41,293 bases of DNA. Source: Macrostomum lignano (Eukaryota). Both the position numbers and the translations under genes were made by a program. Within the stretch, counting starts at the first letter, position 1. Each line of letters begins with the position of its first letter. Of this stretch, positions 4,101-36,543 are shown piece by piece. The stretch spans positions 1 to 41,293 of the forward strand of contig NIVC01003451.1 in NCBI GenBank assembly GCA_002269645.1, in the 5' to 3' direction. The notes beneath the pieces were generated by a model that saw nothing but the letters and a program-made list of their open reading frames with translations, was not told where the DNA came from and made no database searches.

Positions 4101-4163
4101 TGAGCACAATAACAGCTCCATCATATTCCATAGCGAGCACTCTGACTGGCATGGGGCTGAGCA
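1135..4163. repeat. Tandem array of a 57-bp unit (56-bp variants), ~53 copies
   Basis: Unit is ACTGGCATGAGGCTGAGCACAATAACAGCTCCATCATATTCCATAGCGAGCACTCTG. Variants are ATGAGGCT / ATGGGGCT / ATGGGCT and a rare AGCGCAAT. The array ends in a 19-bp partial unit. Confidence 0.98.
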
Positions 4164-5446: not shown

Positions 5447-6213
5447 CCCTCATGGCTGTGAATGGCACGCCAACCTCTTGGCCAATTAATTCGTTTACAA
5501 GCCCCAAATCAATGTGTTTAGCGCAGGGGTGGTGGCGCGAGACTCAAGACGCGCTTACCACCGAGCTGCTCTGCCACAAAGCACACTGATGGGTAAAATT
5601 TTATAATTATGATTTGATACGAGTATGTACTCAATTTTGAGAATTTAAAGCGCCGCAAAAACAAAGTAAATACTAGAAAGCTGCTTCCAGTTCGCAAAAT
5701 TTGCATTTGTTGAGAGATGTCAAATAATTAAGTCTAGCTAAAAAATAGAAATCTTTGAGGAATAAAATCACCTGAATATAATAATCGATTTTGAGATTAG
5801 AAATGCATTCGTATTTTTCTCTCTAACTTCTCTGCAGGAAAAGTTAAATGCAAAAGGAAATGAGAGCAGCAGCATGTCCTTATGCCTTCGAAATCAGCTC
5901 TGGGAGAGTGACATGAAAGTGAAAATCAATCAGGCTCGGTGCAGACTAAATTTACTGCCATTTTGGTACTTTGGACAGAGGTTAAACAATACTGATGATG
6001 AAATGACTATTATTTGCAAACATTGATTACCTTTGAGCACAATCGCATAATTTGGGAGGCCCTTATGCACCAACTGGCATTTCTTAGCATTTACCATTCA
6101 ACTATGGTGCAACTTGGCATAGATGGATCAATGAAGAGACCGTGAACACTGAGAAGGTGATGTGCAGCTGCTGGACTTGCATATAGTTTAAGTAATAATA
6201 ATAAATGACGTAC

Positions 6214-6376
6214 CTTTTGCGCCTTACGCTTGTCTGCCCGCTGATTCTGATGGTAGATGCGGGAAAAATTCGACACAATGACTGGCACGGGCAGGGCGAT
6301 AACAAGGACGCCGGATAAAGAGCAGACACCGCCAACTATTTTGCCGATAATGGTGGACGGCACAATGTCGCCATAG
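6214..6376 (-). CDS. Shal: Shal/Kv4 exon 2 (pore YGD, S6 with [11 protein letters not shown])
   Basis: Acceptor TTGCAG|C TAT GGC GAC completes TTLG-YGD. It encodes [44 protein letters not shown]. Donor AAG|GTACGT; 163 nt, phase 2 to phase 0. Confidence 0.97.
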
Positions 6377-8676
6377 CTGCAAGTTTGTAGTGAAAAACGG
6401 GGGGCAAAGTCAGATTATTATCGGAGATAGGGAACATAGATCAGATCGCATGGCCCGTAGCATTCAGTCCTGACATTATTAGCATAAAATCACGGCAGCC
6501 GCCACTGGGGATTGCGGACGGGAAAAGGGAATAAAATGAAATACAAAAATAAAAAAGACAAGAGCACCGAGTCAAAAGGAAATATTGAAATAAGACTAGA
6601 GACGGCGGCAATCCCAAAGGAACGCGAGATACATACATGGTTCGTGTATAATGCAGCGAGGGCAGAAGAAAATTCATTTTTCAAGCGGCAAACAAGAGGC
6701 CAGCCGGTAGCTAGAAGGGAGGCAAACGGGACGAAAAGTAGAAAGCGAGACGAATGGCGGCACACCGCAATGTCCCACGAGGAGATGCTCGCGAAATATA
6801 ATCTGAATGGAGCGCCCAGGGGCCGCATACCGTAAGAAAAGAGTAAGCATAAATACTACTTATTTAGTATTATTATATAGAGACTGCACGAGTCCATTAT
6901 CAGCCTTATCTGTTTCAAGAGCAAACTTTAGCAGGAACTTGGGAATGATAAGCTTAACACTTAGTACATTTGGCATTGCACTTACAATAATGTCAGTATG
7001 TCTAGTGCCTATGCGCTAAGCAGATCTTCAGCAAAACGAATTCTGATGGCTTCAGATCATATCTATAGTCAGTTATACTGAGTCGCACTGTGTTGTCTAG
7101 CAAATGTCTACAAAGCTTTAAAGCCTTACGAAGCTACGAAGTGATCACTACCCCTTTTACTATGTTGGCTGTCACAGACATGCGTTAGGTTTCATCACTA
7201 GCAACCTAGCATATGCGCCAGCAGATCTATGCATCTGCAGCAGAGCAGCTGAGAGAGGAAACCAAAGAAATGGTTGATAGGGGAAGAGAGTGAAAGAAAG
7301 CAGACTATAGAGGCTTGCAGTAGCCAGGGCCAAGATTGGGGACGGGGTGTGCTGTTGTGGGATATCGGATGGCTAGGAGAGGGGGGTGGAACGGCTATCT
7401 GAGCTGGGGAGCCATAGAGACAAACAGCTCGCAGGCAGGGATAGATGGGAACGGGAATAGAGAGGGATAGAGACCCCGCATCCAACTGATTTATCATTTC
7501 AAACGCGAGGCCCTCCAGGCGTTGGAAAGCGCCGAGTGGTAGCAGGCGAGAATAGAAAAAGATAGAGAAGCCTATAGAACTGAGAGAGGGTTGGCAGGGA
7601 TGAGAAAAACAGAGAAAGCAGGGTAGAGTCAGCTAAGTGTGGCCGGCAGCAACGGGAGGGAGAAATAAATAAGAGAGATTAGGGAAGCGTTTGATTCCCG
7701 ATAAATCGATGCGGCGCAAGGCCAGACCCATGCCAGTGTTGGCAGGGTCAATCTAAAAGCAGATTTTCAGCTGCTGAAACACTGTCATGCAATATTCATT
7801 TTCGGATGGACAGGCGCATTAAAACCCGCCAGACACCGCTGTCTACCAACAGGCACCGGACTCGGTCCATTGTTTTATAAAGACGGCAACATTTGATTCC
7901 GTCAGGCTAACAATAGAAGCTTGCAGAAGCGCTCGTCTGCTTTGGAATGACCGAAGACCAAAAAAACCGACGAGCGTCGAGATGGCAAGACCACAGCTGA
8001 GCAAAAAATGGGCGAGAAGAGGACAGCTACAAAATTGGCGACAGCACTAAATCGAATTTGCCGACCGTGCTGAGCCGCCAGTTCGCATCAGCATAGGCAC
8101 TAAGGCAAACGCGCCACAAGCACCGTAGTGTCGCATAGAAGCTGTGTCGAATTATTCCTAACCGACAAATTCTCTCACCCCAATCCAGCATCCAAATGTG
8201 CGATTCTACATTTTTTCTCCATCATCGCACGGGCTGAACATATTAAATTTTCTATCATATGTCAAAAGCCTAATGGCGAATGCAATGCCCTAGACGCAGT
8301 GACGAAAGACCGCGAGAGGAGAGATCGAACTAAATATTGCTGCAGTGTCGGCGATGCGGCGCTTCCGTGGAAGTGCAGACATGCAAATTACGGCCTTGTA
8401 GACGGCACCCAGAGCCAGTCTTACCCGGACTATTAGATTTCGTAGAAAGTGGAGAGCCTGTTCAACAAGATGCCAGCAGGAGACACTTCCTGCAATTCAC
8501 AGTCCCATCTTTGTAGTTGTGAGTCATTTTCGTTAGCGAAATTTTGTGCTGTAAAAGTAGTGTACGGGCTATAACCTATACTTGAAGAGCAAAAACTAAA
8601 CACTATTGAATTATCCGAAGACTCGGATTGTTCGCCAGACCTATGCAACCCTATGCAAGCAGGGGACTGTGTACGA

Positions 8677-9543: not shown

Positions 9544-9618
9544 TGTGCCAAGAAGAACACGGAAATAGGCCGAAGAAACATAAATATTGTTTTCGATTAT
9601 TTTAAAACCTTAGAATGA

Positions 9619-12600
9619 GCGGCTGAAGCCATTGAAGGCCGGTCAAACAACTCTGATTCTACGCAGAAACTGGAGAGATGAATTCAATTGAAGCTGGGCT
9701 AGCGGCTGAAGCCATTGAAGGCCGGTCAAACAACTCTGATTCTACGCAGAAACTGGAGAGATGAATTCAATTGAAGCTGGGCTAGCGGCTGAAGCCATTG
9801 AAGGCCGGTCAAACAACTCTGATTCGACGCAGAAACTGGAGAGATGAATTCAATTGAAGCTGGGCTAGCGGCTGAAGCCATTGAAGGCCGGTCAAACAAC
9901 TCTGATTCTACGCAGAAACTGGAGAGATGAATTCAATTGAAGCTGGGCTAGCGGCTGAAGCCATTGAAGGCCGGTCAAACAACTCTGATTCTACGCAGAA
10001 ACTGGAGAGATGAATTCAATTGAAGCTGGGCTAGCGGCTGAAGCCATTGAAGGCCGGTCAAACAACTCTGATTCGACGCAGAAACTGGAGAGATGAATTC
10101 AATTGAAGCTGGGCTAGCGGCTGAAGCCATTGAAGGCCGGTCAAACAACTCTGATTCTACGCAGAAACTGGAGAGATGAATTCAATTGAAGCTGGGCTAG
10201 CGGCTGAAGCCATTGAAGGCCGGTCAAACAACTCTGATTCTACGCAGAAACTGGAGAGATGAATTCAATTGAAGCTGGGCTAGCGGCTGAAGCCATTGAA
10301 GGCCGGTCAAACAACTCTGATTCTACGCAGAAACTGGAGAGATGAATTCAATTGAAGCTGGGCTAGCGGCTGAAGCCATTGAAGGCCGGTCAAACAACTC
10401 TGATTCTACGCAGAAACTGGAGAGATGAATTCAATTGAAGCTGGGCTAGCGGCTGAAGCCATTGAAGGCCGGTCAAACAACTCTGATTCTACGCAGAAAC
10501 TGGAGAGATGAATTCAATTGAAGCTGGGCTAGCGGCTGAAGCCATTGAAGGCCGGTCAAACAACTCTGATTCTACGCAGAAACTGGAGAGATGAATTCAA
10601 TTGAAGCTGGGCTAGCGGCTGAAGCCATTGAAGGCCGGTCAAACAACTCTGATTCTACGCAGAAACTGGAGAGATGAATTCAATTGAAGCTGGGCTAGCG
10701 GCTGAAGCCATTGAAGGCCGGTCAAACAACTCTGATTCTACGCAGAAACTGGAGAGATGAATTCAATTGAAGCTGGGCTAGCGGCTGAAGCCATTGAAGG
10801 CCGGTCAAACAACTCTGATTCGACGCAGAAACTGGAGAGATGAATTCAATTGAAGCTGGGCTAGCGGCTGAAGCCATTGAAGGCCGGTCAAACAACTCTG
10901 ATTCTACGCAGAAACTGGAGAGATGAATTCAATTGAAGCTGGGCTAGCGGCTGAAGCCATTGAAGGCCGGTCAAACAACTCTGATTCTACGCAGAAACTG
11001 GAGAGATGAATTCAATTGAAGCTGGGCTAGCGGCTGAAGCCATTGAAGGCCGGTCAAACAACTCTGATTCTACGCAGAAACTGGAGAGATGAATTCAATT
11101 GAAGCTGGGCTAGCGGCTGAAGCCATTGAAGGCCGGTCAAACAACTCTGATTCGACGCAGAAACTGGAGAGATGAATTCAATTGAAGCTGGGCTAGCGGC
11201 TGAAGCCATTGAAGGCCGGTCAAACAACTCTGATTCTACGCAGAAACTGGAGAGATGAATTCAATTGAAGCTGGGCTAGCGGCTGAAGCCATTGAAGGCC
11301 GGTCAAACAACTCTGATTCTACGCAGAAACTGGAGAGATGAATTCAATTGAAGCTGGGCTAGCGGCTGAAGCCATTGAAGGCCGGTCAAACAACTCTGAT
11401 TCTACGCAGAAACTGGAGAGATGAATTCAATTGAAGCTGGGCTAGCGGCTGAAGCCATTGAAGGCCGGTCAAACAACTCTGATTCTACGCAGAAACTGGA
11501 GAGATGAATTCAATTGAAGCTGGGCTAGCGGCTGAAGCCATTGAAGGCCGGTCAAACAACTCTGATTCTACGCAGAAACTGGAGAGATGAATTCAATTGA
11601 AGCTGGGCTAGCGGCTGAAGCCATTGAAGGCCGGTCAAACAACTCTGATTCTACGCAGAAACTGGAGAGATGAATTCAATTGAAGCTGGGCTAGCGGCTG
11701 AAGCCATTGAAGGCCGGTCAAACAACTCTGATTCTACGCAGAAACTGGAGAGATGAATTCAATTGAAGCTGGGCTAGCGGCTGAAGCCATTGAAGGCCGG
11801 TCAAACAACTCTGATTCTACGCAGAAACTGGAGAGATGAATTCAATTGAAGCTGGGCTAGCGGCTGAAGCCATTGAAGGCCGGTCAAACAACTCTGATTC
11901 TACGCAGAAACTGGAGAGATGAATTCAATTGAAGCTGGGCTAGCGGCTGAAGCCATTGAAGGCCGGTCAAACAACTCTGATTCTACGCAGAAACTGGAGA
12001 GATGAATTCAATTGAAGCTGGGCTAGCGGCTGAAGCCATTGAAGGCCGGTCAAACAACTCTGATTCTACGCAGAAACTGGAGAGATGAATTCAATTGAAG
12101 CTGGGCTAGCGGCTGAAGCCATTGAAGGCCGGTCAAACAACTCTGATTCTACGCAGAAACTGGAGAGATGAATTCAATTGAAGCTGGGCTAGCGGCTGAA
12201 GCCATTGAAGGCCGGTCAAACAACTCTGATTCTACGCAGAAACTGGAGAGATGAATTCAATTGAAGCTGGGCTAGCGGCTCAAGCCATTGAAGGCCGGTC
12301 AAACAACTCTGATTCTACGCAGAAACTGGAGAGATGAATTCAATTGAAGCTGGGCTAGCGGCTGAAGCCATTGAAGGCCGGTCAAACAACTCTGATTCGA
12401 CGCAGAAACTGGAGAGATGAATTCAATTGAAGCTGGGCTAGCGGCTGAAGCCATTGAAGGCCGGTCAAACAACTCTGATTCTACGCAGAAACTGGAGAGA
12501 TGAATTCAATTGAAGCTGGGCTAGCGGCTGAAGCCATTGAAGGCCGGTCAAACAACTCTGATTCGACGCAGAAACTGGAGAGATGAATTCAATTGAAGCT

Positions 12601-15600
12601 GGGCTAGCGGCTGAAGCCATTGAAGGCCGGTCAAACAACTCTGATTCTACGCAGAAACTGGAGAGATGAATTCAATTGAAGCTGGGCTAGCGGCTGAAGC
12701 CATTGAAGGCCGGTCAAACAACTCTGATTCGACGCAGAAACTGGAGAGATGAATTCAATTGAAGCTGGGCTAGCGGCTGAAGCCATTGAAGGCCGGTCAA
12801 ACAACTCTGATTCTACGCAGAAACTGGAGAGATGAATTCAATTGAAGCTGGGCTAGCGGCTGAAGCCATTGAAGGCCGGTCAAACAACTCTGATTCTACG
12901 CAGAAACTGGAGAGATGAATTCAATTGAAGCTGGGCTAGCGGCTGAAGCCATTGAAGGCCGGTCAAACAACTCTGATTCTACGCAGAAACTGGAGAGATG
13001 AATTCAATTGAAGCTGGGCTAGCGGCTGAAGCCATTGAAGGCCGGTCAAACAACTCTGATTCTACGCAGAAACTGGAGAGATGAATTCAATTGAAGCTGG
13101 GCTAGCGGCTGAAGCCATTGAAGGCCGGTCAAACAACTCTGATTCTACGCAGAAACTGGAGAGATGAATTCAATTGAAGCTGGGCTAGCGGCTGAAGCCA
13201 TTGAAGGCCGGTCAAACAACTCTGATTCTACGCAGAAACTGGAGAGATGAATTCAATTGAAGCTGGGCTAGCGGCTGAAGCCATTGAAGGCCGGTCAAAC
13301 AACTCTGATTCTACGCAGAAACTGGAGAGATGAATTCAATTGAAGCTGGGCTAGCGGCTGAAGCCATTGAAGGCCGGTCAAACAACTCTGATTCGACGCA
13401 GAAACTGGAGAGATGAATTCAATTGAAGCTGGGCTAGCGGCTGAAGCCATTGAAGGCCGGTCAAACAACTCTGATTCTACGCAGAAACTGGAGAGATGAA
13501 TTCAATTGAAGCTGGGCTAGCGGCTGAAGCCATTGAAGGCCGGTCAAACAACTCTGATTCTACGCAGAAACTGGAGAGATGAATTCAATTGAAGCTGGGC
13601 TAGCGGCTGAAGCCATTGAAGGCCGGTCAAACAACTCTGATTCTACGCAGAAACTGGAGAGATGAATTCAATTGAAGCTGGGCTAGCGGCTGAAGCCATT
13701 GAAGGCCGGTCAAACAACTCTGATTCTACGCAGAAACTGGAGAGATGAATTCAATTGAAGCTGGGCTAGCGGCTGAAGCCATTGAAGGCCGGTCAAACAA
13801 CTCTGATTCTACGCAGAAACTGGAGAGATGAATTCAATTGAAGCTGGGCTAGCGGCTCAAGCCATTGAAGGCCGGTCAAACAACTCTGATTCTACGCAGA
13901 AACTGGAGAGATGAATTCAATTGAAGCTGGGCTAGCGGCTGAAGCCATTGAAGGCCGGTCAAACAACTCTGATTCGACGCAGAAACTGGAGAGATGAATT
14001 CAATTGAAGCTGGGCTAGCGGCTGAAGCCATTGAAGGCCGGTCAAACAACTCTGATTCTACGCAGAAACTGGAGAGATGAATTCAATTGAAGCTGGGCTA
14101 GCGGCTGAAGCCATTGAAGGCCGGTCAAACAACTCTGATTCGACGCAGAAACTGGAGAGATGAATTCAATTGAAGCTGGGCTAGCGGCTGAAGCCATTGA
14201 AGGCCGGTCAAACAACTCTGATTCTACGCAGAAACTGGAGAGATGAATTCAATTGAAGCTGGGCTAGCGGCTGAAGCCATTGAAGGCCGGTCAAACAACT
14301 CTGATTCGACGCAGAAACTGGAGAGATGAATTCAATTGAAGCTGGGCTAGCGGCTGAAGCCATTGAAGGCCGGTCAAACAACTCTGATTCTACGCAGAAA
14401 CTGGAGAGATGAATTCAATTGAAGCTGGGCTAGCGGCTGAAGCCATTGAAGGCCGGTCAAACAACTCTGATTCTACGCAGAAACTGGAGAGATGAATTCA
14501 ATTGAAGCTGGGCTAGCGGCTGAAGCCATTGAAGGCCGGTCAAACAACTCTGATTCTACGCAGAAACTGGAGAGATGAATTCAATTGAAGCTGGGCTAGC
14601 GGCTGAAGCCATTGAAGGCCGGTCAAACAACTCTGATTCTACGCAGAAACTGGAGAGATGAATTCAATTGAAGCTGGGCTAGCGGCTGAAGCCATTGAAG
14701 GCCGGTCAAACAACTCTGATTCTACGCAGAAACTGGAGAGATGAATTCAATTGAAGCTGGGCTAGCGGCTGAAGCCATTGAAGGCCGGTCAAACAACTCT
14801 GATTCTACGCAGAAACTGGAGAGATGAATTCAATTGAAGCTGGGCTAGCGGCTGAAGCCATTGAAGGCCGGTCAAACAACTCTGATTCTACGCAGAAACT
14901 GGAGAGATGAATTCAATTGAAGCTGGGCTAGCGGCTGAAGCCATTGAAGGCCGGTCAAACAACTCTGATTCTACGCAGAAACTGGAGAGATGAATTCAAT
15001 TGAAGCTGGGCTAGCGGCTGAAGCCATTGAAGGCCGGTCAAACAACTCTGATTCTACGCAGAAACTGGAGAGATGAATTCAATTGAAGCTGGGCTAGCGG
15101 CTGAAGCCATTGAAGGCCGGTCAAACAACTCTGATTCGACGCAGAAACTGGAGAGATGAATTCAATTGAAGCTGGGCTAGCGGCTGAAGCCATTGAAGGC
15201 CGGTCAAACAACTCTGATTCTACGCAGAAACTGGAGAGATGAATTCAATTGAAGCTGGGCTAGCGGCTGAAGCCATTGAAGGCCGGTCAAACAACTCTGA
15301 TTCTACGCAGAAACTGGAGAGATGAATTCAATTGAAGCTGGGCTAGCGGCTGAAGCCATTGAAGGCCGGTCAAACAACTCTGATTCTACGCAGAAACTGG
15401 AGAGATGAATTCAATTGAAGCTGGGCTAGCGGCTGAAGCCATTGAAGGCCGGTCAAACAACTCTGATTCTACGCAGAAACTGGAGAGATGAATTCAATTG
15501 AAGCTGGGCTAGCGGCTCAAGCCATTGAAGGCCGGTCAAACAACTCTGATTCTACGCAGAAACTGGAGAGATGAATTCAATTGAAGCTGGGCTAGCGGCT

Positions 15601-16175
15601 GAAGCCATTGAAGGCCGGTCAAACAACTCTGATTCTACGCAGAAACTGGAGAGATGAATTCAATTGAAGCTGGGCTAGCGGCTGAAGCCATTGAAGGCCG
15701 GTCAAACAACTCTGATTCTACGCAGAAACTGGAGAGATGAATTCAATTGAAGCTGGGCTAGCGGCTGAAGCCATTGAAGGCCGGTCAAACAACTCTGATT
15801 CTACGCAGAAACTGGAGAGATGAATTCAATTGAAGCTGGGCTAGCGGCTGAAGCCATTGAAGGCCGGTCAAACAACTCTGATTCTACGCAGAAACTGGAG
15901 AGATGAATTCAATTGAAGCTGGGCTAGCGGCTGAAGCCATTGAAGGCCGGTCAAACAACTCTGATTCTACGCAGAAACTGGAGAGATGAATTCAATTGAA
16001 GCTGGGCTAGCGGCTGAAGCCATTGAAGGCCGGTCAAACAACTCTGATTCTACGCAGAAACTGGAGAGATGAATTCAATTGAAGCTGGGCTAGCGGCTGA
16101 AGCCATTGAAGGCCGGTCAAACAACTCTGATTCTACGCAGAAACTGGAGAGATGAATTCAATTGAAGCTGGGCTA
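9619..16175. repeat. Tandem array of an 83-bp unit, 79 copies
   Basis: Unit is GCGGCTGAAGCCATTGAAGGCCGGTCAAACAACTCTGATTCTACGCAGAAACTGGAGAGATGAATTCAATTGAAGCTGGGCTA, and 6557 bp = 79 x 83. I saw only two SNP types (T42G, G7C). It lies in Shal intron 1. Confidence 0.99.
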
Positions 16176-17346: not shown

Positions 17347-18451
17347 CCCAGCGTCGTCATGGTGACTATAGTGTACCAGAAGGCCGCTGGTATTGATACA
17401 AAGCCTGTTTTAGGTTGATTCTTCTCTGCATAATACATCACGGTAGCGAAGATGATGACTGCCATTGTCATGGAGAACAATAGGAAACCAAGTTCAGAAG
17501 CGCACGACTTCAAAGTGTAGCCCAGAATTCGAAGTCCCATGGAGTGCCTGGAAAACTTGAAGATGCGAAACACTCGAAAAACCCTTAGCGTGACGAAAGC
17601 TCCGCTCAGGTCCTTATTATCCGGCATGAACAGTCCGATATAATAAGGCAGGATAGCCACGATATCGATGACGCTCATCACTGCGCGCAGATGCTTCAGC
17701 CGCTGGGGGCCGCGTACAGCCTGGCCAGGTATTCCACAGTGAAGATGAGCACGCAGGCCGTGTCCAAGCAGAAGAATGCCACTGAGAAGCGGTCTCCGCA
17801 TGCCGGACTCAAATTAGTGCCGGGCTCAACTCCGCACGGGATGGTCTCAAACACGTTAGCGAGAACGGATACGGCAATGAAGAAGCCCGTCACGTAGTAA
17901 ACAACCAATGCTACCGTCGAAGACTGGGGATTCTCGAACGCGCGCCAGAGCTTCTCCCTAGGCGTGCTGTGCGGCATGGCGTTCTCGGCATCGGAGTCCT
18001 TGTCGTCAAACAGGCGCTCGTTATTCTCCCGCTTGCGATCCCTGTAGTCCTCGTAGCAACAGTCGCCCATGATGTCCGGCATGATGCCGAAGAAGGCCAG
18101 CTCCTCATCGTAGGCCATGATGCACTCATTCTTGGGATAGTGCAGCCTGCCGGTGCGGTAGTAGGCCAGGATGTGGCGGAACAGGTCCGGGTCTCGGTCG
18201 AAGAAGTACTGCTTGCTGTCCTCATCGTAGAAGTACTCCTTCTCATCGCTGCCGAGCAGAGTGTCCGGGAACTTCTCCAGCGTGTTGCGCCAAGTGACAA
18301 ACTTGCGCCCGGAGACGCTGATGACCAGCTTCTCGTCCGATTTGTGATCCTCATCTCGCAGCGGGGGCGGCGGCATCGGGCCCTGGGCCACCGGCACCCA
18401 GCCTATGGCCGCCGCCCTGGCAAAGGGAAGCCACGCAGCCACGGCGGCCAT
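17347..18451 (-). CDS. Shal: Shal/Kv4 voltage-gated K+ channel exon 1 (N-terminus, T1, S1-S5, pore), with a 1-bp deletion near 17705
   Basis: Contains the [18 protein letters not shown] KChIP-binding N-terminus and a T1 domain with the HX5CX20CC Zn motif. S4 reads [15 protein letters not shown], followed by [13 protein letters not shown] and TMTTLG|GTGAGT. Adding one C to the C5 run joins ORFs 17696-18451 and 17343-17801 as [14 protein letters not shown]. Confidence 0.97.
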
Positions 18452-18955: not shown

Positions 18956-19196
18956 GAAAGCAGGCAGAGGTTGGTGAGGGGATAGAAATGCAACGAGCGA
19001 GAGCGACGAGGATGGAGCTGCAGAAGGCCACGCAGAAGGGATGGGACTGGGAGGGGGAAGAGGGTGGATAGAAGTGGAAAATGGGTAGAGTTGGGACAAC
19101 ACTGGCAATGCTACTGTCGTCGAATAAGAAATTTTCCTATTGCTGTCCATCTTGCGCTTTTATATGAAATCTTTATTGACACTACAGTTTTTGCAT
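18956..19196. repeat. ~241-bp repeat, copy 1 (inverted partner of 26602-26843)
   Basis: Its reverse complement is nearly identical to 26602-26843. It contains the G4-type motif GGGATGGGACTGGGAGGGGGAAGAGGG (19038-19064). Confidence 0.9.
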
Positions 19197-19356
19197 ATGC
19201 GCATTACATTACTGTAAAAGTGAGTAATATAAGAAAAAGTATTAACGCATTTCTTGTTTTTTTCAGCGAAAAACCTGAAATAAACATTATTAAACGAAAC
19301 CACCATTTGGACCTCGGATATTTACTTTCCTATGGGCCGTTAAGTAACCGAAAACA

Positions 19357-20751
19357 CCGGGTGGCGCATAAGTAACCGAAAAAGTTTAAACTTAATAACT
19401 ATCGCATACATAGAGGCACGTTAATGAAACTAACAGCCTTGAAAGTTCTCAAGTTGGCAATAATCATACTGGCTAAATCGAGTTCTAAATTTGAGCGCTA
19501 ATTTTTTGAGTTCTAAATCTGACATTTCGCTCATGTCAGAACAGGTGCTTGACGAAATGGCTTGTAAAAGCAGCCTGAAGTGTAAAGTATCTTCGATTTT
19601 TTATCGCGTCTTCGTACGAAAGTACCCACAGCCTCGTTGTTGTGCAACGAAAATTCTGAGCCCAGTTTGTACTGAATGCCAAACTACCTACAAGATCCAC
19701 TATTCTGGCTATTCACAGCAAAGTTGTGGAAACAGGGAACCTTCATGACAAACAGTGAAGCGGATGGTCTGTGTCTACGAGAACAACGGATGCGGTCGCT
19801 GCAGTGCTGACTGCCTACGATGATAACCAAACAATGTCAACACGCCATGCGTCTGTGGAACTCGGAATGTCACGGAGATCTGTCTAAAGAATCCTTCATG
19901 GAGAGGGCCTTAACCCCTAAAAACTACAAATGCTGCAGGAAATCAGCAAGATTGCATTGATCGCCTATCGTTTTGCGAAAAGATGCTGCAGGCCATTCGT
20001 GAGGATGAAATTCTTCTGTCACACGTCATCTGGACTGATGAGGCGCATTTTCATCTCAGCGGAAAAGTTAACAGGCACAACTGCAGATACTGGTCGTAGG
20101 ATAATCCCTATCATACAATGAGTAGCCCCATGCATTTCGCGAAGACCACAGCGGCGGCATCATCGGCCCATTCTTTGACAAGACTGTCACTGGCCAGTCT
20201 TACCTAGCAATGCTCAAGGAACAACTGCTTCCGATGCTACAGAGAATGCCCCAGTTCAGAGCTAGTCGACTTTGGTTCATGCAAGATGGTGCCCCGCCAC
20301 ACTGGGCTTCTGGTATGCGCGACTGGCTGAAAAACATCTTTGGCAAGCAGTGTATTGACCGAGGAGGACCCATGCGCTGGCCTTCTCGAAGCACTGACCT
20401 CACACCATGCGACTTCTACTGGTGGGGTGATCTGAAACGACGAGTATAAGTTCGCCAGATGGTCTCCATTCAGGAGCCGAAGCAGCAGGTTGTCTCTGCT
20501 ATCGGTACTGCACCACACCTTCAGACTGCTGTTACAACTTACAAGCCATTTCGTCAAGTGCCTAGAGTTCTGCTGTGAGAAAATGGTGCTCATATTGAGA
20601 AATCGATTTAGTCTGGTTATTGACAACTTAGAAACTTTTATACTGCAAAAAAGTTCTTATCATGTGTTCTTTAAGACTGTTGAGTTTCGTTAACATGGCT
20701 CTATATATGTGATAGTTTTTTTAATTTTTTAATTACTTATGTGCTATCTGG
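19357..20751 (+). mobile_element. Tc1/mariner DD41D (rosa/visitor-type) transposon, transposase decayed
   Basis: WTDEAHFHLSGKVNRHNCRYWS* at ~20031 and WFMQDGAPPH...WPSRSTDLTPCDF, with 41 residues between the second and third Asp. About 90-bp imperfect TIRs (19357-19445 and 20665-20751), with TA at 20752. Confidence 0.88.
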
Positions 20752-23329
20752 TAAGATTTACTGTGCAATATTGTATCATAGGTGCCTGGGTTTTTTGCTT
20801 TGGCCCAGTTGACAGACTACCATAGTTTGACTGAATTTTCAGCTCCCCCTCCAGCTAGGTGCCCTAGAAAGGTACCAGCTGGCGTTGAGACTTGCATAAG
20901 CACATAGTATTTGTGGATTGGTAACAATGAATAGCTCATCTTAAGCTTGAAAATATTCTTTTAACAATAAAAATAATTATAAATATTTAATAATTGTTTC
21001 ACATTGGTACAAAACCAAGTTCCAACCACAGATGCTAGAATAACTAGATAGGCCACTTAGCACATTGCATTTAAACCACTCTTAGTTCAGTAGTAAGTTA
21101 AGCAAAAGCATTATAATGTATTTTTAGGCCAATGCTCATTTATTGGCTCTTAATCCCCCTAGCTTAAACACTCCAAATGTGCCTTTCCACAATACCTCCA
21201 CATCCCAATTTTTATTGCCTTCTTGGAATTCTAGTCTAAAGCAATTATGCACATTTTAATGGACTGGCTAATGTACATTATTGCTGAATCAATTAGCTAG
21301 TTCTTTAAATGCCTACAAGCTTAGGCTTCTAAACTTATCAAAGTAATTTCAGCTGCCTTTTTTCTTATAAAATAGCTTATGCATTCTTTTTTGCTACTAA
21401 ACTAAAAGTATAAAGCTGTTTTACTAAGTATACTATATATGCCTGACTGGCTAATCTATTTGTAGTCCAAACTAACTACTAAATATTAAATATTGGATAT
21501 AAATGCTTAGAAAGAGCTGAAATATAGCAACAACTGAAAGCTACAATATGCAATATAGTGTCAGAGCATATTGTATATGTGCATCATTATGTGTATCATT
21601 ACTTAGAATATGAAATATATCATTTATTATATTGTAAAATTAATCTTAAACAATGCCTAGCATTATAAATGCAATGCAAATACAAATGAGTACAATACAA
21701 AAAGTAGGCATTTTAGAATATTCTAAACATATAAAGAACTTATATATGCTTCATGCTGAACATTAAAAACATTAATAATTAAGAAAAATTCTTCTAATAA
21801 GATTACCTGAATTGCTATTTTTAAGAAAAATATACAGATTTCATAATTGAATAGTCTAAAATTTTATTTGCCAAAATTCATTTAACCATTGGCATTTTTG
21901 CAAACAAAAAATTAAAACAAAATTAGGTAGCATATTAAATAATTTTCACCTATCTAGACAAGTCTCAAAACTAAATTGCATTTTCAGTCAAAACTAAAAT
22001 AGTAATTTCTACATTTCAAAGGTTAAATATATAGTATAGTCAAATAAATACTCAATTTGAGCCCAAATGAGTCAATCAAATAACTGAAGTTTTTTATTTG
22101 ACTTGACCAAACATTTGGACTAAAAATTCTTGTCAATTAGTTTTTTGAATACTTATATAATATGCATATAAAACTGAAAAAGTCTCAAGTTTAAAGAGAG
22201 AAACAATCTATGTACTTAGAAGCTTAGAACTTTAAAAATTTTTTAATAGTTTGTATCTATTAACTTATATTATTTGTTAAGCATTTTAAAAACAATGACA
22301 GAGACAAAACTATGAAAACATGCATGCAGTATAAAGTATGAGCTATGAAATTAATTATTTAAAAATAATCACAATTCTTATATATTGATTAAAAAACTTG
22401 ATATTGAACTTTACTTAAACTACTCAACTTATCAAAAACTCAACCAAGTAGTCAACTTATCCAACATCTAAGCTTGGTTAGACTCTAATATATAGTATAG
22501 ACTATTTGAATGAATAGGCTACTTTTATTTGAATAAAAATAACTAAATATCTAAAGTTTAAAATGCTATTTAAAAGACTAATAGCCAAAATCCCTATTAG
22601 AATAAATGTTGAAAACCTGTGGATGCACACTATAAAACAGTCATTATTTTACTGTGCTTTAGCATTATTAGAGATATTCCAAAATAGCACTTTCTGTTGA
22701 AATTGAAATTTCTTCCAAAATCAAGTCTATTAACTTGGACATTAACTTCCAAAATCAAAATTTAGAAAAACAAAGTTAAATATGACCAACACTCACTTTT
22801 TACTTTTGATTTACTGCTTATGCAAAACAAAATACATGTATATGTAGCAGAAATTGGTTTTTTAGCCACTTTTGGAAAATTGAAATTGAATTCTGTAATA
22901 TCTCTAAAGCATTATAAATTACGAGTGTATAGGCCCTTTCCACAGAGGTATTAGGCCCCCTTCAATGTATATTTATTTGCTAGAGTAGCAGCCAACAGAA
23001 AATAGCAGCACACACATAAGCACCTGGGCATGCACTATGCTTTAGAAAAATTTCAAAAGTGTGCCAGCTGCCATCTACAATTTTACAACTTTTTCCTATA
23101 GGGACCAAAATGACTTTATAAAAATAAGGGGTCAACTAGTTTGCTAGAGAAAAAAAGAGATAGAACTCTTATTGTTAGAATTCTATTCAATCAAATCTAT
23201 CAGCTAAATCTCATGACCTAAATCCTATCTTTTAAATCATCTCCAAATCTTCTATAAAACTTCCCAAATAGCAAATACAATATCTTATTTGCCCTATTTG
23301 CAATTTTTTTTGCCATGCTCCATAACAAA

Positions 23330-24070
23330 CTAAGACTCTCCTGTCTCCTCTTTGCTTTTCTATCTTTGCTTTTTTCCTTTGTTATCTCTTTTCTCCTTTT
23401 TTTCTTTCCTCTACTTTTTATCTTTTCTTATCTCACTCCTCTCTGCTTTCTCATAACTGCTCTTTACTCTTTACTTAACTGATCTTTTTACTCTCCTCTG
23501 TCCTCTTTTCTCTTTTACCACACTACTCTTTCATCTCTTTCTTTTCCCCTTTTCCTCTTTTTTCCTTTCTCTTGTCTCTTTCTACACTCTTATCTTTTAT
23601 CTTTACTCTCTTATCTATCATCTGCTATTCTTTTCTCCATCCTCTTTTATCTCCATTTTCTTCTTTTCTCACTTTTCTCTTTCCTTTTAACTTCTCATTT
23701 CTTCTCTTGTCTCTATCTCTTTAATACAAATTAGAATAAATTTATGTTAAATGTTAAGATTTGAGACAAGCATTGATCTGATTAGTTTAGCATGTAGAAT
23801 ATTAGGAAATGTTTGTATAAAGCATAAGATTGGCAAACTTTGGCTTCTGGCTCTGCCTTTCTCTATGTCCCTTAGGTCTTTCAAGACTAATTTGCTCTCT
23901 CCTTATTCTTCCTATTCCTATTCTCTTTTTTCTCTCACCCTCTCTTTTCTCTAATCTCTAATCTCTTATCTTTCCTTTTTTCTCTATTGTCTCTGGTCTT
24001 TTATCTTTTTGTCTACTTTTTTCTCTCCAATTTTTTTCTTTTTTTCTTCTTTGAAATCTACTTTCTTCTA
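23330..24070. repeat. Long polypyrimidine (C/T) low-complexity tract
   Basis: About 700 bp dominated by CT/TTC/CTT motifs on the + strand, with a short AT-rich interruption at ~23720-23850. Confidence 0.8.
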
Positions 24071-25580
24071 TCATCCTATATACTAAAAATTTTTCTTCTA
24101 GATTTAAGTTTGGCTAGATTCCTTTGAATGTTCCAATTTTTTGGTATATGGGCATACCCTGGGTATATACCATAGTCTTGAATATGCATAGTACATACAA
24201 GATTTTTTGCCTTGCATAGTATATGAGGTTTGGATTGAATCTACTAAGACCAAGGAATATTACAACAATTGCTCTAGCAGTAGTGTATTATGGGATTTCT
24301 TGAGTTTTTTCTATTCTAAAGTAGGCATGTGCACTTTAAAATTTTTAATTAAACCTTGAAATTGAAGAAGTGGATTAGTGATAGATCCAAATATTTAGAT
24401 TTGAATCCAAATCCAAAAAGTCTCACTTTTTTTAGAAGTCTAAATGTTTCAGATTTCTTAAATTATATTTTCCAAATTTCCAATTGTGCTTCCGAATATG
24501 AAAAAATCAAAAAACCAAAACAACATTATGCTAATGTAAAAGAAATATAACTTTAAAAAAGAAAGTCAATTAAAAAACAAGAATGCAAAATTTTATGTAA
24601 TATTGTTTGTTTTGACAATTGTCTATTTTTTCAGTAACATATTATTAAAAAGTGTTAATAAGTAAAATTACTTAACTTTGGGACCTTTGAAGCATTTTCA
24701 ACTTAAAGTTGCAGAAACTTACTCTAGATCATGTAATACATGCCTAAAAATTTAAGCATGCATTGGACTTGGATGTCAAAAATAGGCATGCACAATTGGT
24801 ATATATCACTCTTAAAAATGTCTGTGCACACCTAGTATATACTTTATAAAATCATGCAAGAGAGTTATTGTAAAGTACAAAAAATATTCAAAAGTTCATT
24901 TTAAATATAAATTTCAAGCTTTCTAGGTTTTTTAAAGCTTGTAATAAAGCATTTAAAGTAATAAAGCATATAAAAAGGTCATTTATTGACATTGTCACAA
25001 TATCAGTGTAGCTTTAAGAATAGGTATGCACTTAATTTTTTGGCATGCATTTGAAGTTATTCAACTTCTGTTTAGGCATACATATGCACCTAGCATAATC
25101 CAGACTATGGCCTAAGCCTTAAAATTACACTTTTAAATTAGGTATACGTAAGGTAAAATTTGGCAAATTGTCTCTGGCATAAAGATGAAACCTAGATAAG
25201 CATATTAAACATTAGGCCCCTATTTTTAGGCTTTTGTAGTAATACCAATAGGCCTATGCCTTAATTGCCATTTTTGACTTAAAAATTGGCTTAAACCAAA
25301 GTGGACAAGGGCCTATATGGTCTATCTTTAGGCCTACTTTGATAATACCCTAGGCCTAGGACAGGAGGCATCGGCTTAGTCAAACTTTTTTTAATTAGTA
25401 GTTAGGGGGCCTGCCTAGCCTTAGATTTCAGATCATTTTAGATCTTAGTTCATTCTAGCCTCAAATTTGCCAAATGGCAAAATGATTCAAGAATTTGATA
25501 AAGTTTATCAACTATATAGACATAGGCCAAGTCCTAGTGAGTAGTGATTAATTAGGGAGTCTAATCATAGGGCCTAAGTT

Positions 25581-25650
25581 CAGGGGCATAGGCATAGGAA
25601 GGGGGATAGGGGGGTGTATCCCCCATAGGAAATTCCTGGCTATGCCCTGT
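25581..25650. repeat. Mini inverted-repeat element
   Basis: CAGGGGCATAG...CTATGCCCTG around G-run/C-run tracts. It looks like a GGCGTAG...CTACGCC hairpin with both CpGs deaminated. Confidence 0.4.
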
Positions 25651-26601
25651 CTAGGTTCTATAGGCTACTTTCACATTCCTAATTCCAGAACCAGAATCAG
25701 TTTGGATCTTACAAGAAAAAAGCAGTATAACTAGGGCCTATTCAACTTTGTTGAACGTTTGACTGCTTTAAGAGCCTCACAATTTGCACAATTTTCGACT
25801 TTCTTCTTGGCTATTGCCATTCTGGCATTCAATAATTACAACTTTATAGCACGTAGGCCCTATATCCCTCTAGTTTAGGAGACAAAAGTTACTTTACAAA
25901 TTGGATCTGGTTCTAGAACCAGAACAAGCAATAAGAAAATGTGGTGTACGAATAATGTAGTAATAGTAGAAAGTTTGGCTCAAGCAAGAAGCCTGTTTGG
26001 CCAATATATTTCAGTGCATTTAAAAATAATTCAAGAGTAGAAGGCAATATTTATAACGCAGCAAGTACGACAGGCACCCAGCAGCAGCAGGTTAAAATAC
26101 TTTTAAACTATAAACGTTTTAAACAAAAATTCGACTACTTATAAAGGAAAAGTTATAAAATTCTAACTTGCATTCCTAAAATCGTCTTTCTGCTTAAATT
26201 ATACATTCTGGCAGTTATGCATGCGTGTAGGCTTATGCGTCCTCATATCTGATCGTCCCAGACAAGACCGAAAATTCGAAACCGATTTTTGAGCTTCCAA
26301 TTTTAACAGGGTCCCTCCGGCCAAAATTCCTGTCCAGAGGAAATTTTTATATGCCAAACAATTCCAGCAGGTAACTTAAGGGCCTGTCAACTTAAGATCA
26401 TAAAGCTGACCCCGAAAAAGTTAAAACCTATCTATCTACATAAATCATTATTACGTGTCATTCTGCTCACGTGACACCAGAAAGCTGGATTTGGCAAAAA
26501 ATACAAAAATTGGACCTGGGATAGGAGAGAACAAGCAAAGGGGACAATTTGGTACGTCACCTTATGAGCTTAAGTTTACATAAGATCGAGTAAGGTTGGC
26601 G

Positions 26602-28013: not shown

Positions 28014-28295
28014 TACTCCGTGAAAAGAATTGGAAATCTGAACACGGCTTTTCTTAATTCTAACCCAAAAACTATATTATATATTCCTCACTTGCCCACA
28101 GTCCACAGTCTATGGTTAAAAGTGGACCCGTTTATACGCCCCAGACAAGGAGTTCATATAAGTAGCTCATGGATGAATGGACAAACATTTTTCTCCAGAC
28201 TCATACTCGCTGTTATCTCAAAGGTCTTTCGCAATGGAAAAAAAAACTTAAACCTGGCGCAATACCAATGCAATACCCAGCTACGCTGCAGCTTC

Positions 28296-28730
28296 CAGCT
28301 TCAATCCCACCCCAAGTGTCACCGCAACCATCACCAGCTTCAATCCCACCCTAAGTGTCACCGCAACCATCACCAGCTTCAATCCCGCCCCAAGTGTCAC
28401 CGCAACCATCGCCATGCAGCTTCAGTCCCACCCCAAGTGTCACCGCAACCATCACCAGCTTCAATCCCACCCCAAGTGTCACCGCAACCATCACCAGCTT
28501 CAATCCCACCCCAAGTGTCACCGCAACCATCACCAGCTTCAATCCCACCCCAAGTGTCACCGCAACCATCACCAGCTTCAATCCCACCCCAAGTGTCACC
28601 GCAACCATCACCAGCTTCAATCCCACCCCAAGTGTCACCGCAACCATGGCCAGCTTCAATCCCGCCTCAAGTTGCACCGCAACCTTCGCCAGCTTCAATC
28701 CCATCTCAAGTTGCACCGCACTCACCAGCT
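28296..28730 (+). repeat. 39-bp minisatellite (~11 copies), ASIPPQVSPQPSP in the transposase frame
   Basis: Unit is CAGCTTCAATCCCACCCCAAGTGTCACCGCAACCATCAC. One unit has a 4-bp insertion. Confidence 0.95.
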
Positions 28731-29256
28731 TTCATGCAAAATCCAAATTCAACAAAGAAGAATTTGCGGCCTAAAATAAAGAAAATGGAGACAAAGTAAG
28801 AAAAGAAGGATACCTGACGCATTTAGAAGGAATTTGCAGCACTATAAGATGCGCTCAAAGCGGCTAACCAAAATTTTAAATGCAACCGTGAAAAGAGTTA
28901 AGCGGCTGGAAAATGAATCAGCAAATATGAGCAAAAATCTGAAGATGTTTTTTAACGAAAGAAGGACGAAGAATGATGCTAAACTCGAGCAGAGGGAAGA
29001 GTGGCAGATTTTTGGCGGACATTGGCATCTTTGCCGCACAGGTGCACTTCTGTTCTCCAAAGGCGTATTCTGTAATCAGACGAGTTGTAAAGTTACCGGC
29101 TGTGTCTACCATCAGAAGATGGAAGCTCGCTGTTGACGGGGATCCTGGTGTGTCCTCTACGGTAGTTTCAAAGATAAAGGAGCTATGTAATCAATCGATA
29201 TGGAACAAAAATTGGGTAATCGTGATTGATGCGATGAAGCTGCGAAAGGAGTTATG

Positions 29257-32042: not shown

Positions 32043-32607
32043 CTACATAAGGTAGATTACCAGCCGATCAGCGTAGCCGCTGCCCACTCTGCTAGGAGCA
32101 TCCTGGATGTAGTTGTAAACCAGAACTGGCAGAGATCCCTTGAAGCCCTCGCTAATCCAGGGACAGGAGTCTTCCTTGTCCGAAACGACAAAGAAGCTGC
32201 GCTCGGTGTCACAGCCCCCGCCCGTACTGCTGATTGAGAAATGCCGCTTTCTGGATGAGTCGCATTCAGCGAAAACTGGCTGAATTCAGTCCGGCCGATC
32301 CAAAATGGGTACGACGACTCGATCCGCTCCTTCGAGAACCAGTTTTCGCGAGTCAACTTGTCCGTATCCTTGGCAACGTTGAAAATCACCTGCGACACGA
32401 CGCTCTTGCCTTCGCGCATCTCAACAACCATCCTTGACTTGCCCGACTGCTTTACAGTCAAGGCCAGCTGGTCCAAGAGATCGGAGCGGTACACTGGTGG
32501 CAGCGAACCGTCTGCCAGCATTTTGAAGTCCTGCCTATGCGAAAACACGTTAAGCGCCTCTCGGTCGACATTTGCCTTGATTGTGAACAGAAGCTGCTTG
32601 TATTCTT
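32043..32607 (-). CDS. Tandem-domain protein, terminal exon (domain 4), 1-bp deletion near 32258
   Basis: Acceptor TTTGCAG|AA in phase 1, reading KQLLFTI...DGSLPPVYRSDL...NWFSKERIESSYP. Adding one G gives NGDSSRKRHF...GGGC..ERSFFVVSD...CPW...GYADRLVIYLM* (TAG at 32045-32043). Confidence 0.8.
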
Positions 32608-32736
32608 CTGCAAATAGAGAGAAATTAAAGAGTGAAACATGAAATAAAATTTTCATTAGCTTTATTAATCAACTACGTCAGTAGTAGCTTTAAAGGGTCC
32701 GGCAAACCCGTTTAATATAAAGCAAATACGACTCAC

Positions 32737-33341
32737 CGAAAATAATAATTTTTTTGTATTCGGCACGTGGGTCAAGGAACTCGTTTGACAGATAAATGAT
32801 CAATCTGTCCGCGTACCCAACGCTTTCGTGGAACGATCGACCCTGCTCTCGGTTGTAGGCCAGACTCGGAGGAGAGCCTCGCCAGCCTCGAGTTACCCAG
32901 TCGCAGCTGCCGCGTGAGTCAGACACCATGATGAAGCCTGAATCTCTGGTGCAACCTCCATAGTGGTTGCTGATGTAGAATTTTCGGCTAGCATCCCCTT
33001 CAAAGAAAAGTAGTTGAACTCTTTCCGACTAATTGGATAAGGGTAAGATGAGTACAGTCTTAACAGCGAAAACCAGTTCTCTTTGTCGAGCTTGTCAGTG
33101 TCGGTGGAAACATCGAATGCCACTTGAGAGACGACTTTATTGTCTTTGCGCATCTCGACGACCATCTTGGTCATTCCCGACTGCCTCACAGCTCGAGGAA
33201 GCTCGTCGATGAGATCGGATCTGTAGACCGGAGGCAGAGATCCATCGGCAGGCATTTTGTAGTTTTGTTGATGTTTGAATGTCTCCAGAGCCTTCAACTG
33301 CACGTTCGGAACAATAGTGAACAACAGCTGTTTGTCGTTTT
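32737..33341 (-). CDS. Tandem-domain protein exon (domain 3), 1-bp deletion near 33000
   Basis: Boundaries TTTAG|AA and TTC G|GTGAGT (phase 1-1). 605 nt plus 1 missing base = 606. It joins ORFs 32893-33324 and 32690-32929. Confidence 0.82.
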
Positions 33342-34859: not shown

Positions 34860-35880
34860 TCGTATCAACAGGTACGGAAAGCCGTGTTATTAAAAATGAA
34901 GTGGCTATGGTCATAGGCATCGCCTCTCCGAGATGACTCGGATGGCCTAGGGCTTGCCATACCACGATACCTGCTACCAGGCAACCACCTAACCCGGTGG
35001 GCACACACTACTTGGCCGCGGATTACGGAGGTGATTATTTCTCTGAGCTCCAGCTCGTCCGATGCCCCAAGTTCTGGCACTTCTTTTTTGCCACTGCTGC
35101 AACCCAAGCCCCAACGACTGCAAACGCTCCGGCCAGACTCTCAGAAAAGGTCTCCCATTCCTACACTGCCAAAGCACACCATGAAGAAAACTTGCCAAAA
35201 AATTTATTACAGCTGGGTCTAACGCTATCTACGGAACCAGGTATGGACGTATAGCGCCCATCACACTCTTGGTCCTGATGAGCGACACTCTGAGACTCGG
35301 CAGCCACGCCACCGCTCCGCAGTCACTCCAGACCCTGTGCCTTTCCTACGACGCCAGTATTCACACCGGGACCATCCCGCTCAAATGCGCCGGCCAAGAC
35401 TGCACCTCGTTTTGCCATCGCACGACAGCATGCAGAGAAATCCCCAGGTACAAGGGGTGCACTCTCGGAATTTGTCCGAGCCACTCGGCGATACCGGACC
35501 CCGTCAAGTCGATTGCCGGCCGTCGCGCTGGCGCCCTTTGTGAAAACTGCTGCGACCCGGGATCCGAACATGGCCTGTTGCGGCGGCTGAAGCCACAAAG
35601 TCCGCGCCGTCATCCGCTGATCCCTTGCAACCGCTGGGTCGACTATTGCCACAAAGTGTACACCGGCCTCAAAAGAACCGTTGCAACACAGAATGCCTTT
35701 AGCAGCATGCATTGCATCACCCCCGTGCCACCCGGAGGTGACCCCGGTGCACGCCAACCGCTCCGCCTGCTTCCGCACCATCGAGCGCCAGGAGTCAATT
35801 CGGTTTCTCCAATGGAACGCCGGTGAGGTCTCCCTCAAGATTGCCGAACTTCAAGACCACACCAAACAACAGGAACAACC
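34860..35880 (+). mobile_element. Non-LTR retrotransposon 5' fragment: three degenerate PHD-like fingers and the start of an APE endonuclease
   Basis: Cys/His clusters at ~35113-35250, ~35330-35490 and ~35540-35720, then IRFLQWNAGEVSLKIAELQ (APE N-terminal QWN motif). It is truncated immediately after. Confidence 0.65.
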
Positions 35881-35929
35881 AATCAGCATAAAGGCAACAA
35901 ATACTAACTGCTTTAAATAACACACTTAC

Positions 35930-36543
35930 CAAACATGACTGTCCGATTGAACTCCTCTCGCAGTTCCGCACCGAGTCCGTCAGGTAGATTGTGAACCGAT
36001 CAGCATAGTCCACTCCGCTCCTTAAGGTGGCAGTTCGGTATCTGTTGTACGCCAGCACTGGAGCCGAGCCCTTCCAGCCTTCGTTGGCCCAGGTGCACCC
36101 ATCGCGTTTGTCGGACACCATCCAGAAACCTCGATCATTGACACAACTACCGTAAGAAAATGAGGCCAAAAAGCGACGTTTCAAAGGGGCGTCCCCGTTA
36201 ATACTAAAGTAGTTCATGCTTTGTTTCGGATCGATATTGAATGGATACGACGAGACGAGTCGAGAGCGCGAGAACCAGTTCATCAGTGTGATCTCGTCGG
36301 TCTTCTCTGACAAGTCAAACACCATCCGAGCGCCCACGCGATCGTCCTTCTCCATCTCAGCGACAATATTTGTCTTTCCTGATTGCTTCACAGTGAGGGC
36401 GAGTTGATCGAGCAGGTCAGATCTGTAGACAGGAGGCAGAGACCCGTCAGTCGGAACCTTGTAGTTCTGCTGGACAGAGTACGCAGACAAGGCCTCGGTG
36501 TTGATATTGGATTTGATCGTGAACAGCACTTGCTTGTTGCCAT
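35930..36543 (-). CDS. Tandem-domain protein exon (domain 2), 1-bp deletion near 35965
   Basis: Acceptor TTGCAG|AT and donor TTTG|GTAAGT. It encodes NWFSRSRLVSSYP...FSINGD..KRRF...YGSCVNDRGFWMVSD...CTW...YADRFTIYL. 614 nt plus 1 = 615 restores a linker ending EEFNRTVMFG, colinear with AEFKKPLIVG. Confidence 0.85.

Follow-up and report, generated by a model that had tools for sequence, protein, structure and literature searches.

One end of a Tc1/mariner-type transposon copy in Macrostomum lignano has decayed by one-way C:G>T:A change at the edge of a CpG-exhausted domain

The right end of a 1395-bp Tc1/mariner-type element, located at 19357-20751 of the window (the whole 41,293-nucleotide stretch analyzed), has decayed by one-way C:G>T:A change. 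This decay is the regional effect of a 5.15-kb domain in which CpG is nearly absent, and not a property of the end-repeat as a repeat. It is seen in the polarity of the changes, in the depletion of all NCG trinucleotides, in the two boundaries of the domain, in a gradient within the element and in the lack of any dependence on repeats or motifs. Judged from these traits, the agent was most likely cytosine methylation. The decay pattern would best be classed with a known kind of feature, the border of a methylation-decay domain, with two unusual traits: CpG loss is almost total, and change at non-CpG sites is modestly in excess. The features on which the analysis bears are collected in Table 1.

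Table 1. Coordinates of the features discussed (TIR, terminal inverted repeat; o/e, observed/expected ratio)
Feature	Position	Strand	Remarks
Tandem array	1135-4163		57 bp x 53 copies, 98% identical, 3 kb
Tandem array	9618-16175		83 bp x 79 copies, 99% identical, 6.5 kb
First coding exon, Shal/Kv4 potassium-channel gene	17696-18451	-	
Left counterpart of the TA target-site duplicate	19355-19356		reads CA
Left outer TIR	19357-19443	+	GC 0.39, 5 CpG, little altered
Left subterminal inverted-repeat blocks	19473-19504 and 19543-19567		within 19473-19567
Transposase pseudogene, Tc1/mariner (DUF4817/HTH + DDE_3)	19558-20611	+	
Shore zone within the element	20527-20751		CpG sites of L001 lost by transition 9/12
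Right subterminal inverted-repeat blocks	20580-20611 and 20539-20563		overlap 3' end of transposase reading frame
CpG-exhausted domain	20605-25755		5151 bp, GC 0.30, GpC o/e 1.58
Right outer TIR	20668-20751	-	GC 0.27, 1 CpG
TA target-site duplicate, right end	20752-20753		
Polypyrimidine (CT-rich) low-complexity tract	23330-24060	+	~700 bp; sole strand-skewed part of the domain
Three paralogous ORFs	32057-32656, 32893-33324, 35795-36529	- (all)	

The element has TIRs flanked by TA, with the qualification that its left flank is CA; its arms align over at least 87 bp and are followed by subterminal blocks, 19473-19504 pairing with 20580-20611 (81% complementary) and 19543-19567 with 20539-20563 (92%). 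The indels at the right end are a 7-bp deletion, which lies in the outer TIR, and a 7-bp duplication near 20540. The conceptual product of the transposase pseudogene matches hundreds of DUF4817/HTH plus DDE_3 transposases; the Pfam DDE_3 match of the pseudogene itself is weak, and this domain is annotated on many intact homologues. The reading frame is interrupted by seven in-frame stops; compared with its relative L001 (see below), it is also shifted by several indels, among them deletions of 4 bp near 19947 and of 19 bp near 20150. Alignment with intact homologues pointed to four invariant aspartates, D27, D110, D147 and D152. From D110 to D152 (in PCDF) there are 41 residues, and from D110 to D147 (in SPDL) there are 36, so that the DD41D label given by the first-pass annotation holds if the third D is the PCDF Asp and fails, with a spacing of 36, if it is the SPDL Asp. 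Taken on these features, the copy is an old, dead and degenerate member of a known transposon kind with a putative DD41D-type spacing. With the Visitor/DD41D elements of the Tc1/mariner group it shares, by features alone, the TIRs, the flanking TA and the HTH/DUF4817 plus DDE_3 transposase, and it would also share the spacing of 41 residues if the PCDF D is the third of the triad (36 with the other invariant D); it differs in being a pseudogene copy, with relatives at 84% and 71% nucleotide identity. Just left of the element, at 19340-19354, TTAAGTAACCGAAAA agrees with ATAAGTAACCGAAAA of the left arm (19369-19383) at 14 of 15 positions, and this short repeat may have been left behind by an earlier end-repeat or by aberrant repair.

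A protein search returned two close relatives, P0001 and P0002, with 75% and 58% amino-acid identity, respectively. At the DNA level, the contigs of these relatives are 84% (L001, over 19834-20744 of the window) and 71% (L002) identical to the element, and among the two only L001 reaches the outer end. L001 is an environmental contig of 1086 bp (Ga0254891_1135838 of JGI metagenome 3300022725). Its right tip, ...GTTACTTATGCGCCACCCTG followed by TA, is GC-rich and resembles the left arm of the window; like the window's right end, it abuts TA (...CCCTG, then TA). The transposase of L001 is encoded by a frame that stays open as far as its stop codon, a hint that this copy was active until recently in a host not yet sampled. 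When metagenomes were scanned with P0001, no relative exceeded 42% identity, and scans with the TIR pattern of bacterial and archaeal genome contigs and of viral contigs gave chance matches, none of which extended past the pattern. Close relatives of the element are very rare in public data.

When the two outer arms, whose letters are as quoted in the first-pass annotation, were aligned, 61 identities and 9 gap columns were obtained in 87 columns. In thirteen transitions the G/C base lies in the left arm and the A/T base in the right one, against a single reverse transition (a left-arm CpG>TpG) and three transversions; for 13 versus 1, a two-sided binomial test against symmetry gives p ~0.002. 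The one-way C:G>T:A bias noticed earlier in the right TIR is real, and the by-eye count of 12 forward changes, one reverse transition and one transversion was correct in direction, its numbers becoming 13, 1 and 3. In a purine/pyrimidine-collapsed alphabet the identity of the arms rises to 90%, versus 71% in four letters.

In order to assign a polarity to these changes, the right end of L001 was used as third sequence, which makes the polarity dependent on a single relative of 84% identity; the interior baseline was polarized with both L001 and L002. Since the right end of L001 is GC-rich, the right arm of the window is the derived one, and by this comparison the right end of the family is not inherently AT-rich. 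The one-way claim thus survives the check that had been set for it, namely that the right TIR of the family might already be AT-rich. Nine of the 13 transitions are derived in the right arm, four at CpG and five at non-CpG G:C pairs, with no derived A:T>G:C (0/44) and three derived transversions. Five G>A are interspersed with four C>T; at the tip, the first four changes are all G>A inside 8 bp. The earlier statement that non-CpG sites are affected was borne out by 5 of the 9 derived changes, on only five sites, one of which adjoins an alignment gap. In the left arm, parsimony gives four derived A:T>G:C, one pair of which makes a CpG (CTA>CCG). These four changes, together with the flanking CA in place of TA, are a single-outgroup result; the two arms may have drifted in opposite compositional directions.

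In the element interior, 12/226 non-CpG G/C, 4/48 CpG bases and 10/243 A/T were changed. G:C>A:T changes are far more frequent in the right arm (9/27 vs 16/274, p=8e-5), and so are those outside CpG (5/20 vs 12/226, p=0.007; small numbers and one outgroup). Derived transversions amount to 3/71 in the right arm and 13/517 in the interior.

The right arm lies on the border of the domain. Within the latter, 6 CpGs are present where about 100 are expected (P ~3e-35), the last ones standing at 20688, 20883, 22922, 24493, 25147 and 25372. The rest of the window has a GC of 0.48 and a CpG o/e of 0.77 (0.79-0.92 in the non-repeat flanks). CpG density is about 8 per 200 bp up to ~20604, ~0 by 20700 and near 0 until 25755. 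Inside the element the loss is graded: relative to L001, CpG sites lost by transition number 6/37 in 19834-20526 and 9/12 from 20527 on (Fisher p=3e-4), the loss climbing to the tip at 20751 with no step. The edge gradient is ~200 bp wide and overlaps the right arm; 100-225 bp at the right-hand end of the element fall within the domain. The one-sided boundary proposed near 20650 was therefore well placed, as CpG falls to ~0 between 20527 and 20700.

At the right edge of the domain, the segment 25200-25755 has a GC of 0.39 and a CpG o/e of 0.05, and the adjoining 25756-26300 has a GC of 0.36 and a CpG o/e of 0.85. On the other side, 19150-19356, which flanks the element on the left and is AT-rich (GC 0.32), has a CpG o/e of 1.53. 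As CpG o/e shifts at near-equal GC, it is CpG loss, not AT-richness, that defines the domain.

No gene was detected and no Rfam family was found inside the domain, and there are no tRNAs anywhere in the window. A Pfam search of the six frames of 20751-23340 (the first half of the domain) gave no matches. Sensitive blastn and a purine/pyrimidine-collapsed search of the window returned only polypyrimidine low-complexity matches and the TIR itself; in the repeat searches of the window, the domain shared no repeat with other DNA, and no second element was found across its right edge. Outside the CT-rich tract, the domain has no GC or AT skew. The hexamer GGCCTA/TAGGCC is strongly enriched at 25100-25750 (16 occurrences in the 5-kb domain vs 12 in the other 36 kb), which partly accounts for the high GpC o/e. 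A 22-nt inverted repeat, 82% complementary, spans the right edge (25683-25704 and 25897-25918); it is too short to serve as a second dated comparator and may be due to chance.

The sequence context of the loss was examined in the trinucleotides of the domain. ACG, CCG, GCG and TCG all stand at 0.01-0.05 of their flank frequency (a 20-100-fold depletion), compared with 0.49-1.26 for the twelve NCH contexts and 0.70-0.98 for the trinucleotides containing CpA. No preference for TC, CC, WRC or CA motifs was observed in this depletion. The CpA/TpG o/e is 1.05 in the domain versus 1.08-1.12 in the flanks, the surplus predicted by CpG decay being missing. TpA o/e is raised (0.89 vs 0.65-0.84), as is TpA/ApT (1.04 vs 0.72 elsewhere), and several former CpGs now read TpA (CCG>TTA; ACGC>ATAC at 20641-20642). 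The absence of a TpG/CpA surplus and the rise of TpA imply further C>T at CpA/TpG.

The RIP-like character attributed to this decay by the first-pass annotation did not hold. RIP requires a TpA/ApT of at least 0.89, a (CpA+TpG)/(ApC+GpT) of at most 1.03 and a composite index above 0; with 1.04, 1.37 and -0.33, the domain does not have this dinucleotide signature, and its CpA contexts are kept. The change in the right arm is almost only C:G>T:A, as in RIP (9 vs 0 A:T>G:C, with 3 transversions). RIP targets duplicated sequence in fungal hosts with RID/Dim-2-type machinery at work in the sexual cycle; the domain is single-copy in the window, nearby repeats are intact and the host is an animal. 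In the variant spectra of the 57-bp and 83-bp tandem arrays, C>T and G>A are absent (register slips led to 33 of 53 units being skipped for the 57-bp array), and the three paralogous ORFs, in GC-rich and CpG-normal DNA, show no C>T decay. Among the 15 papers listed by a literature search, no invertebrate RIP-like case was found, all RIP-like reports being fungal. Neurospora-type RIP was rejected, given the failed indices. APOBEC-like editing was also set aside as unlikely, since neither the strand-coordinated clusters nor the TC/CC/WRC motif of AID/APOBEC action is seen. What stands of the local deamination proposed on one side of the boundary is a one-sided, local C>T process, which is neither RIP-like nor specific for repeats. 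As for 5-methylcytosine decay, two of its traits are found, CpG being depleted whatever the flanking base and the edges being set by CpG instead of base composition; the matching TpG/CpA surplus is absent, and non-CpG cytosines exceed the background rate (5/20 vs 12/226).

On this sequence evidence, we consider it somewhat probable that the element straddles the edge of a germ-line-methylated domain, the CpGs of which were removed by 5-methylcytosine deamination. Dense germ-line cytosine methylation would cover 20605-25755, beside an unmethylated CpG-rich region upstream of Shal, and deamination of 5-methylcytosine would convert CpG into TpG/CpA within the domain. A fuzzy domain edge, about one nucleosome wide (20527-20751), would cover the right end of the element; because of this overlap, CpGs would have disappeared from the right arm and survived in the left arm and the interior. 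In the interior, the rate of change is no higher at CpG bases than at the remaining G/C (4/48 vs 12/226), which is what unmethylated DNA should show. Mosaic methylation is established in such invertebrate lineages.

Several observations run against the methylation reading in its simplest form. The CpG o/e of 0.05 is unusually low, below that of typical methylated invertebrate gene bodies or of vertebrate bulk DNA. The non-CpG excess of the right arm, ~5x the interior on 5 sites, is not predicted by CpG-only methylation; it is real but small. Furthermore, the domain has no recognizable gene body or transposon to account for targeting, and the nearest long Shal-flanking contigs, from a distant species (L013 and L014), have no such block, with a uniform GC of 0.40 and a CpG o/e of 0.89. 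The low o/e, the missing TpG/CpA, the TpA products and the non-CpG excess suggest an added, weaker C>T pressure in the domain. The extra G:C>A:T at non-CpG sites might come from a secondary AT-biased regime, for which faster deamination in easily melted AT-rich DNA, a lack of GC-biased gene conversion and some non-CpG methylation are candidates.

A rival reading is an enzymatic deamination of cytosine confined to the domain, as a burst or sustained (RIP-like or AID/APOBEC-like), acting in any context with a CpG preference and independently of duplication. Such a process, which we regard as unlikely, would account for right-arm rates of ~8x (CpG) and ~5x (non-CpG) those of the interior with 0/44 A:T>G:C, for CpGs turned into TpA at CCG>TTA and at 20641-20642, for a CpG o/e beyond ordinary methylation decay, for the TpA/ApT of 1.04 against 0.72, and for the run of four G>A within 8 bp at the tip. 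It is difficult to reconcile with the lack of selective TC, CC, WRC or CA depletion, with the values of 1.37 and -0.33 for (CpA+TpG)/(ApC+GpT) and the composite RIP index, with the mixing of C>T and G>A in a domain devoid of strand skew, and with a right edge where CpG alone changes and GC is equal on both sides; the domain is also single-copy in the window, where genuine repeats are untouched, and the RIP-like reports retrieved were fungal, with no invertebrate case among the papers listed. In its strong form, a homology-independent cytosine hypermutation restricted to domains of an animal germ line, which erases all CpGs and hits non-CpG sites at ~5x background, the proposal is slightly less probable again. 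If true, it would mean that AT-rich, CpG-free islands with ~200-bp edges are carved from otherwise unmethylated DNA by a process functionally analogous to RIP but with no need for repeats.

A shift in fixation bias instead of mutation is as doubtful as the enzymatic process. The CpG-rich region upstream of Shal would here be a hotspot of recombination and GC-biased gene conversion, where G:C>A:T is held back and A:T>G:C promoted, and the domain would be cold and drift to an AT-rich mutational equilibrium. It fits with the four A:T>G:C gained by the left arm and its flanking CA in place of TA, set against 0/44 in the right arm, and with an interior where A:T>G:C (10/243) roughly balances non-CpG G:C>A:T (12/226), for an equilibrium GC of ~0.43-0.45, like the flanks. 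It leaves unaccounted for the 20-100-fold loss specific to CpG, the edges at equal GC and the AT-rich left flank that retains a CpG o/e of 1.53; moreover, the left-arm A:T>G:C were called with a single outgroup, and the same pattern could have arisen through G:C>A:T occurring in parallel in L001 and in the right arm. The boundary lies inside a repeated element, prone to recombination and assembly errors, and the right end carries extra indels (the 7-bp deletion and the 7-bp duplication near 20540), so the right 100-225 bp could derive from an older domain-resident copy, joined to a younger one through ectopic recombination, gene conversion or an assembly mis-join. This chimera is improbable, more so than the preceding explanations: an older segment would carry every type of change, yet A:T>G:C is 0/44 and transversions are 3/71 versus 13/517, CpG loss is gradual from 20527 to 20751, the terminal TA is preserved and the end-repeats remain in register. 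A chimeric origin would, in any case, leave the biased decay of the domain to be accounted for. That the ends were never alike, the right end of the family being naturally AT-rich with no change in situ, is very improbable; some Tc1/mariner families do have imperfect TIRs, but the right end of L001 is GC-rich and, at 9 of the 13 transitions with G/C on the left and A/T on the right, agrees with the left arm of the window.

Compared with known systems, the domain shares with germ-line-methylated domains (those of mosaic invertebrate methylomes and vertebrate CpG-island shores) the CpG-specific loss in all contexts, sharp edges independent of GC with a graded zone of ~200 bp, and a neighbouring CpG-rich, apparently unmethylated region upstream of a gene. 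It differs from them in being more extreme (o/e 0.05) without a TpG/CpA surplus, in its raised non-CpG C>T in the sole datable segment, and in having no recognizable gene body or transposon. Fungal RIP is similar in its one-way C:G>T:A change and in the AT-rich block sharply edged against normal DNA, and it can leak a few hundred bp into adjoining sequence; here, the host is an animal, CpA is not preferred, the composite index lies below zero, the window has no second copy of the mutated block and genuine nearby repeats are unmutated. The clustered C>T/G>A in a mobile element recalls the AID/APOBEC editing of vertebrate retroelements, from which the present case is distinguished by the absence of strand coordination and of a TC/CC/WRC motif, and by an affected region that runs 5 kb past the element into unique DNA.

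The gene beside the domain was identified by its first coding exon, the product of which is 70-76% identical to annelid, mollusc and chelicerate proteins and marks the host as an animal; no exact copy of this protein is in the records, where its best homologues stand at 72-76% identity. The element lies ~0.9 kb and the CpG-free domain ~2.2 kb upstream of the Shal start codon, and between the exon and the domain the CpG o/e is 0.95-1.5. At 6268-6382 (- strand), a match to the Rfam family K_chan_RES, a potassium-channel RNA-editing signal, scored 68 bits against a gathering score of 51; it overlaps a 90-aa ORF (6091-6363) on the strand of the Shal exon, and may lie in a downstream exon of this gene. 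The 83-bp array, located between the first exon and this putative downstream exon, is probably intronic. Elsewhere in the window, the three paralogous ORFs have in common the motif ADGSLPPVYRSDL...VKQSGK...ENWFS...SSYP; none of the three matches Pfam, and one of them, searched against a collection of 5.8 billion proteins, had no homologue. A 39-bp tandem repeat (11 copies, 92% identical) at 28295-28731 (+ strand) lies within a 259-aa ORF and encodes a 13-residue proline-rich unit (PQVSPQPSPASIP).

Both ends of one transposon copy are equal in age, and the copy thus provides an internal clock for mutation regimes 1 kb apart. A boundary of ~200 bp splits two kinds of DNA: on one side, CpGs change no faster than other G/C, and on the other, virtually every CpG has disappeared, along with a quarter of the remaining G/C. 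Were the domain methylated, it would be a clean natural example of germ-line methylation sharply shaping invertebrate sequence, located just upstream of a gene for a neuronal channel; were it unmethylated, an unknown localized deamination process would be implied.
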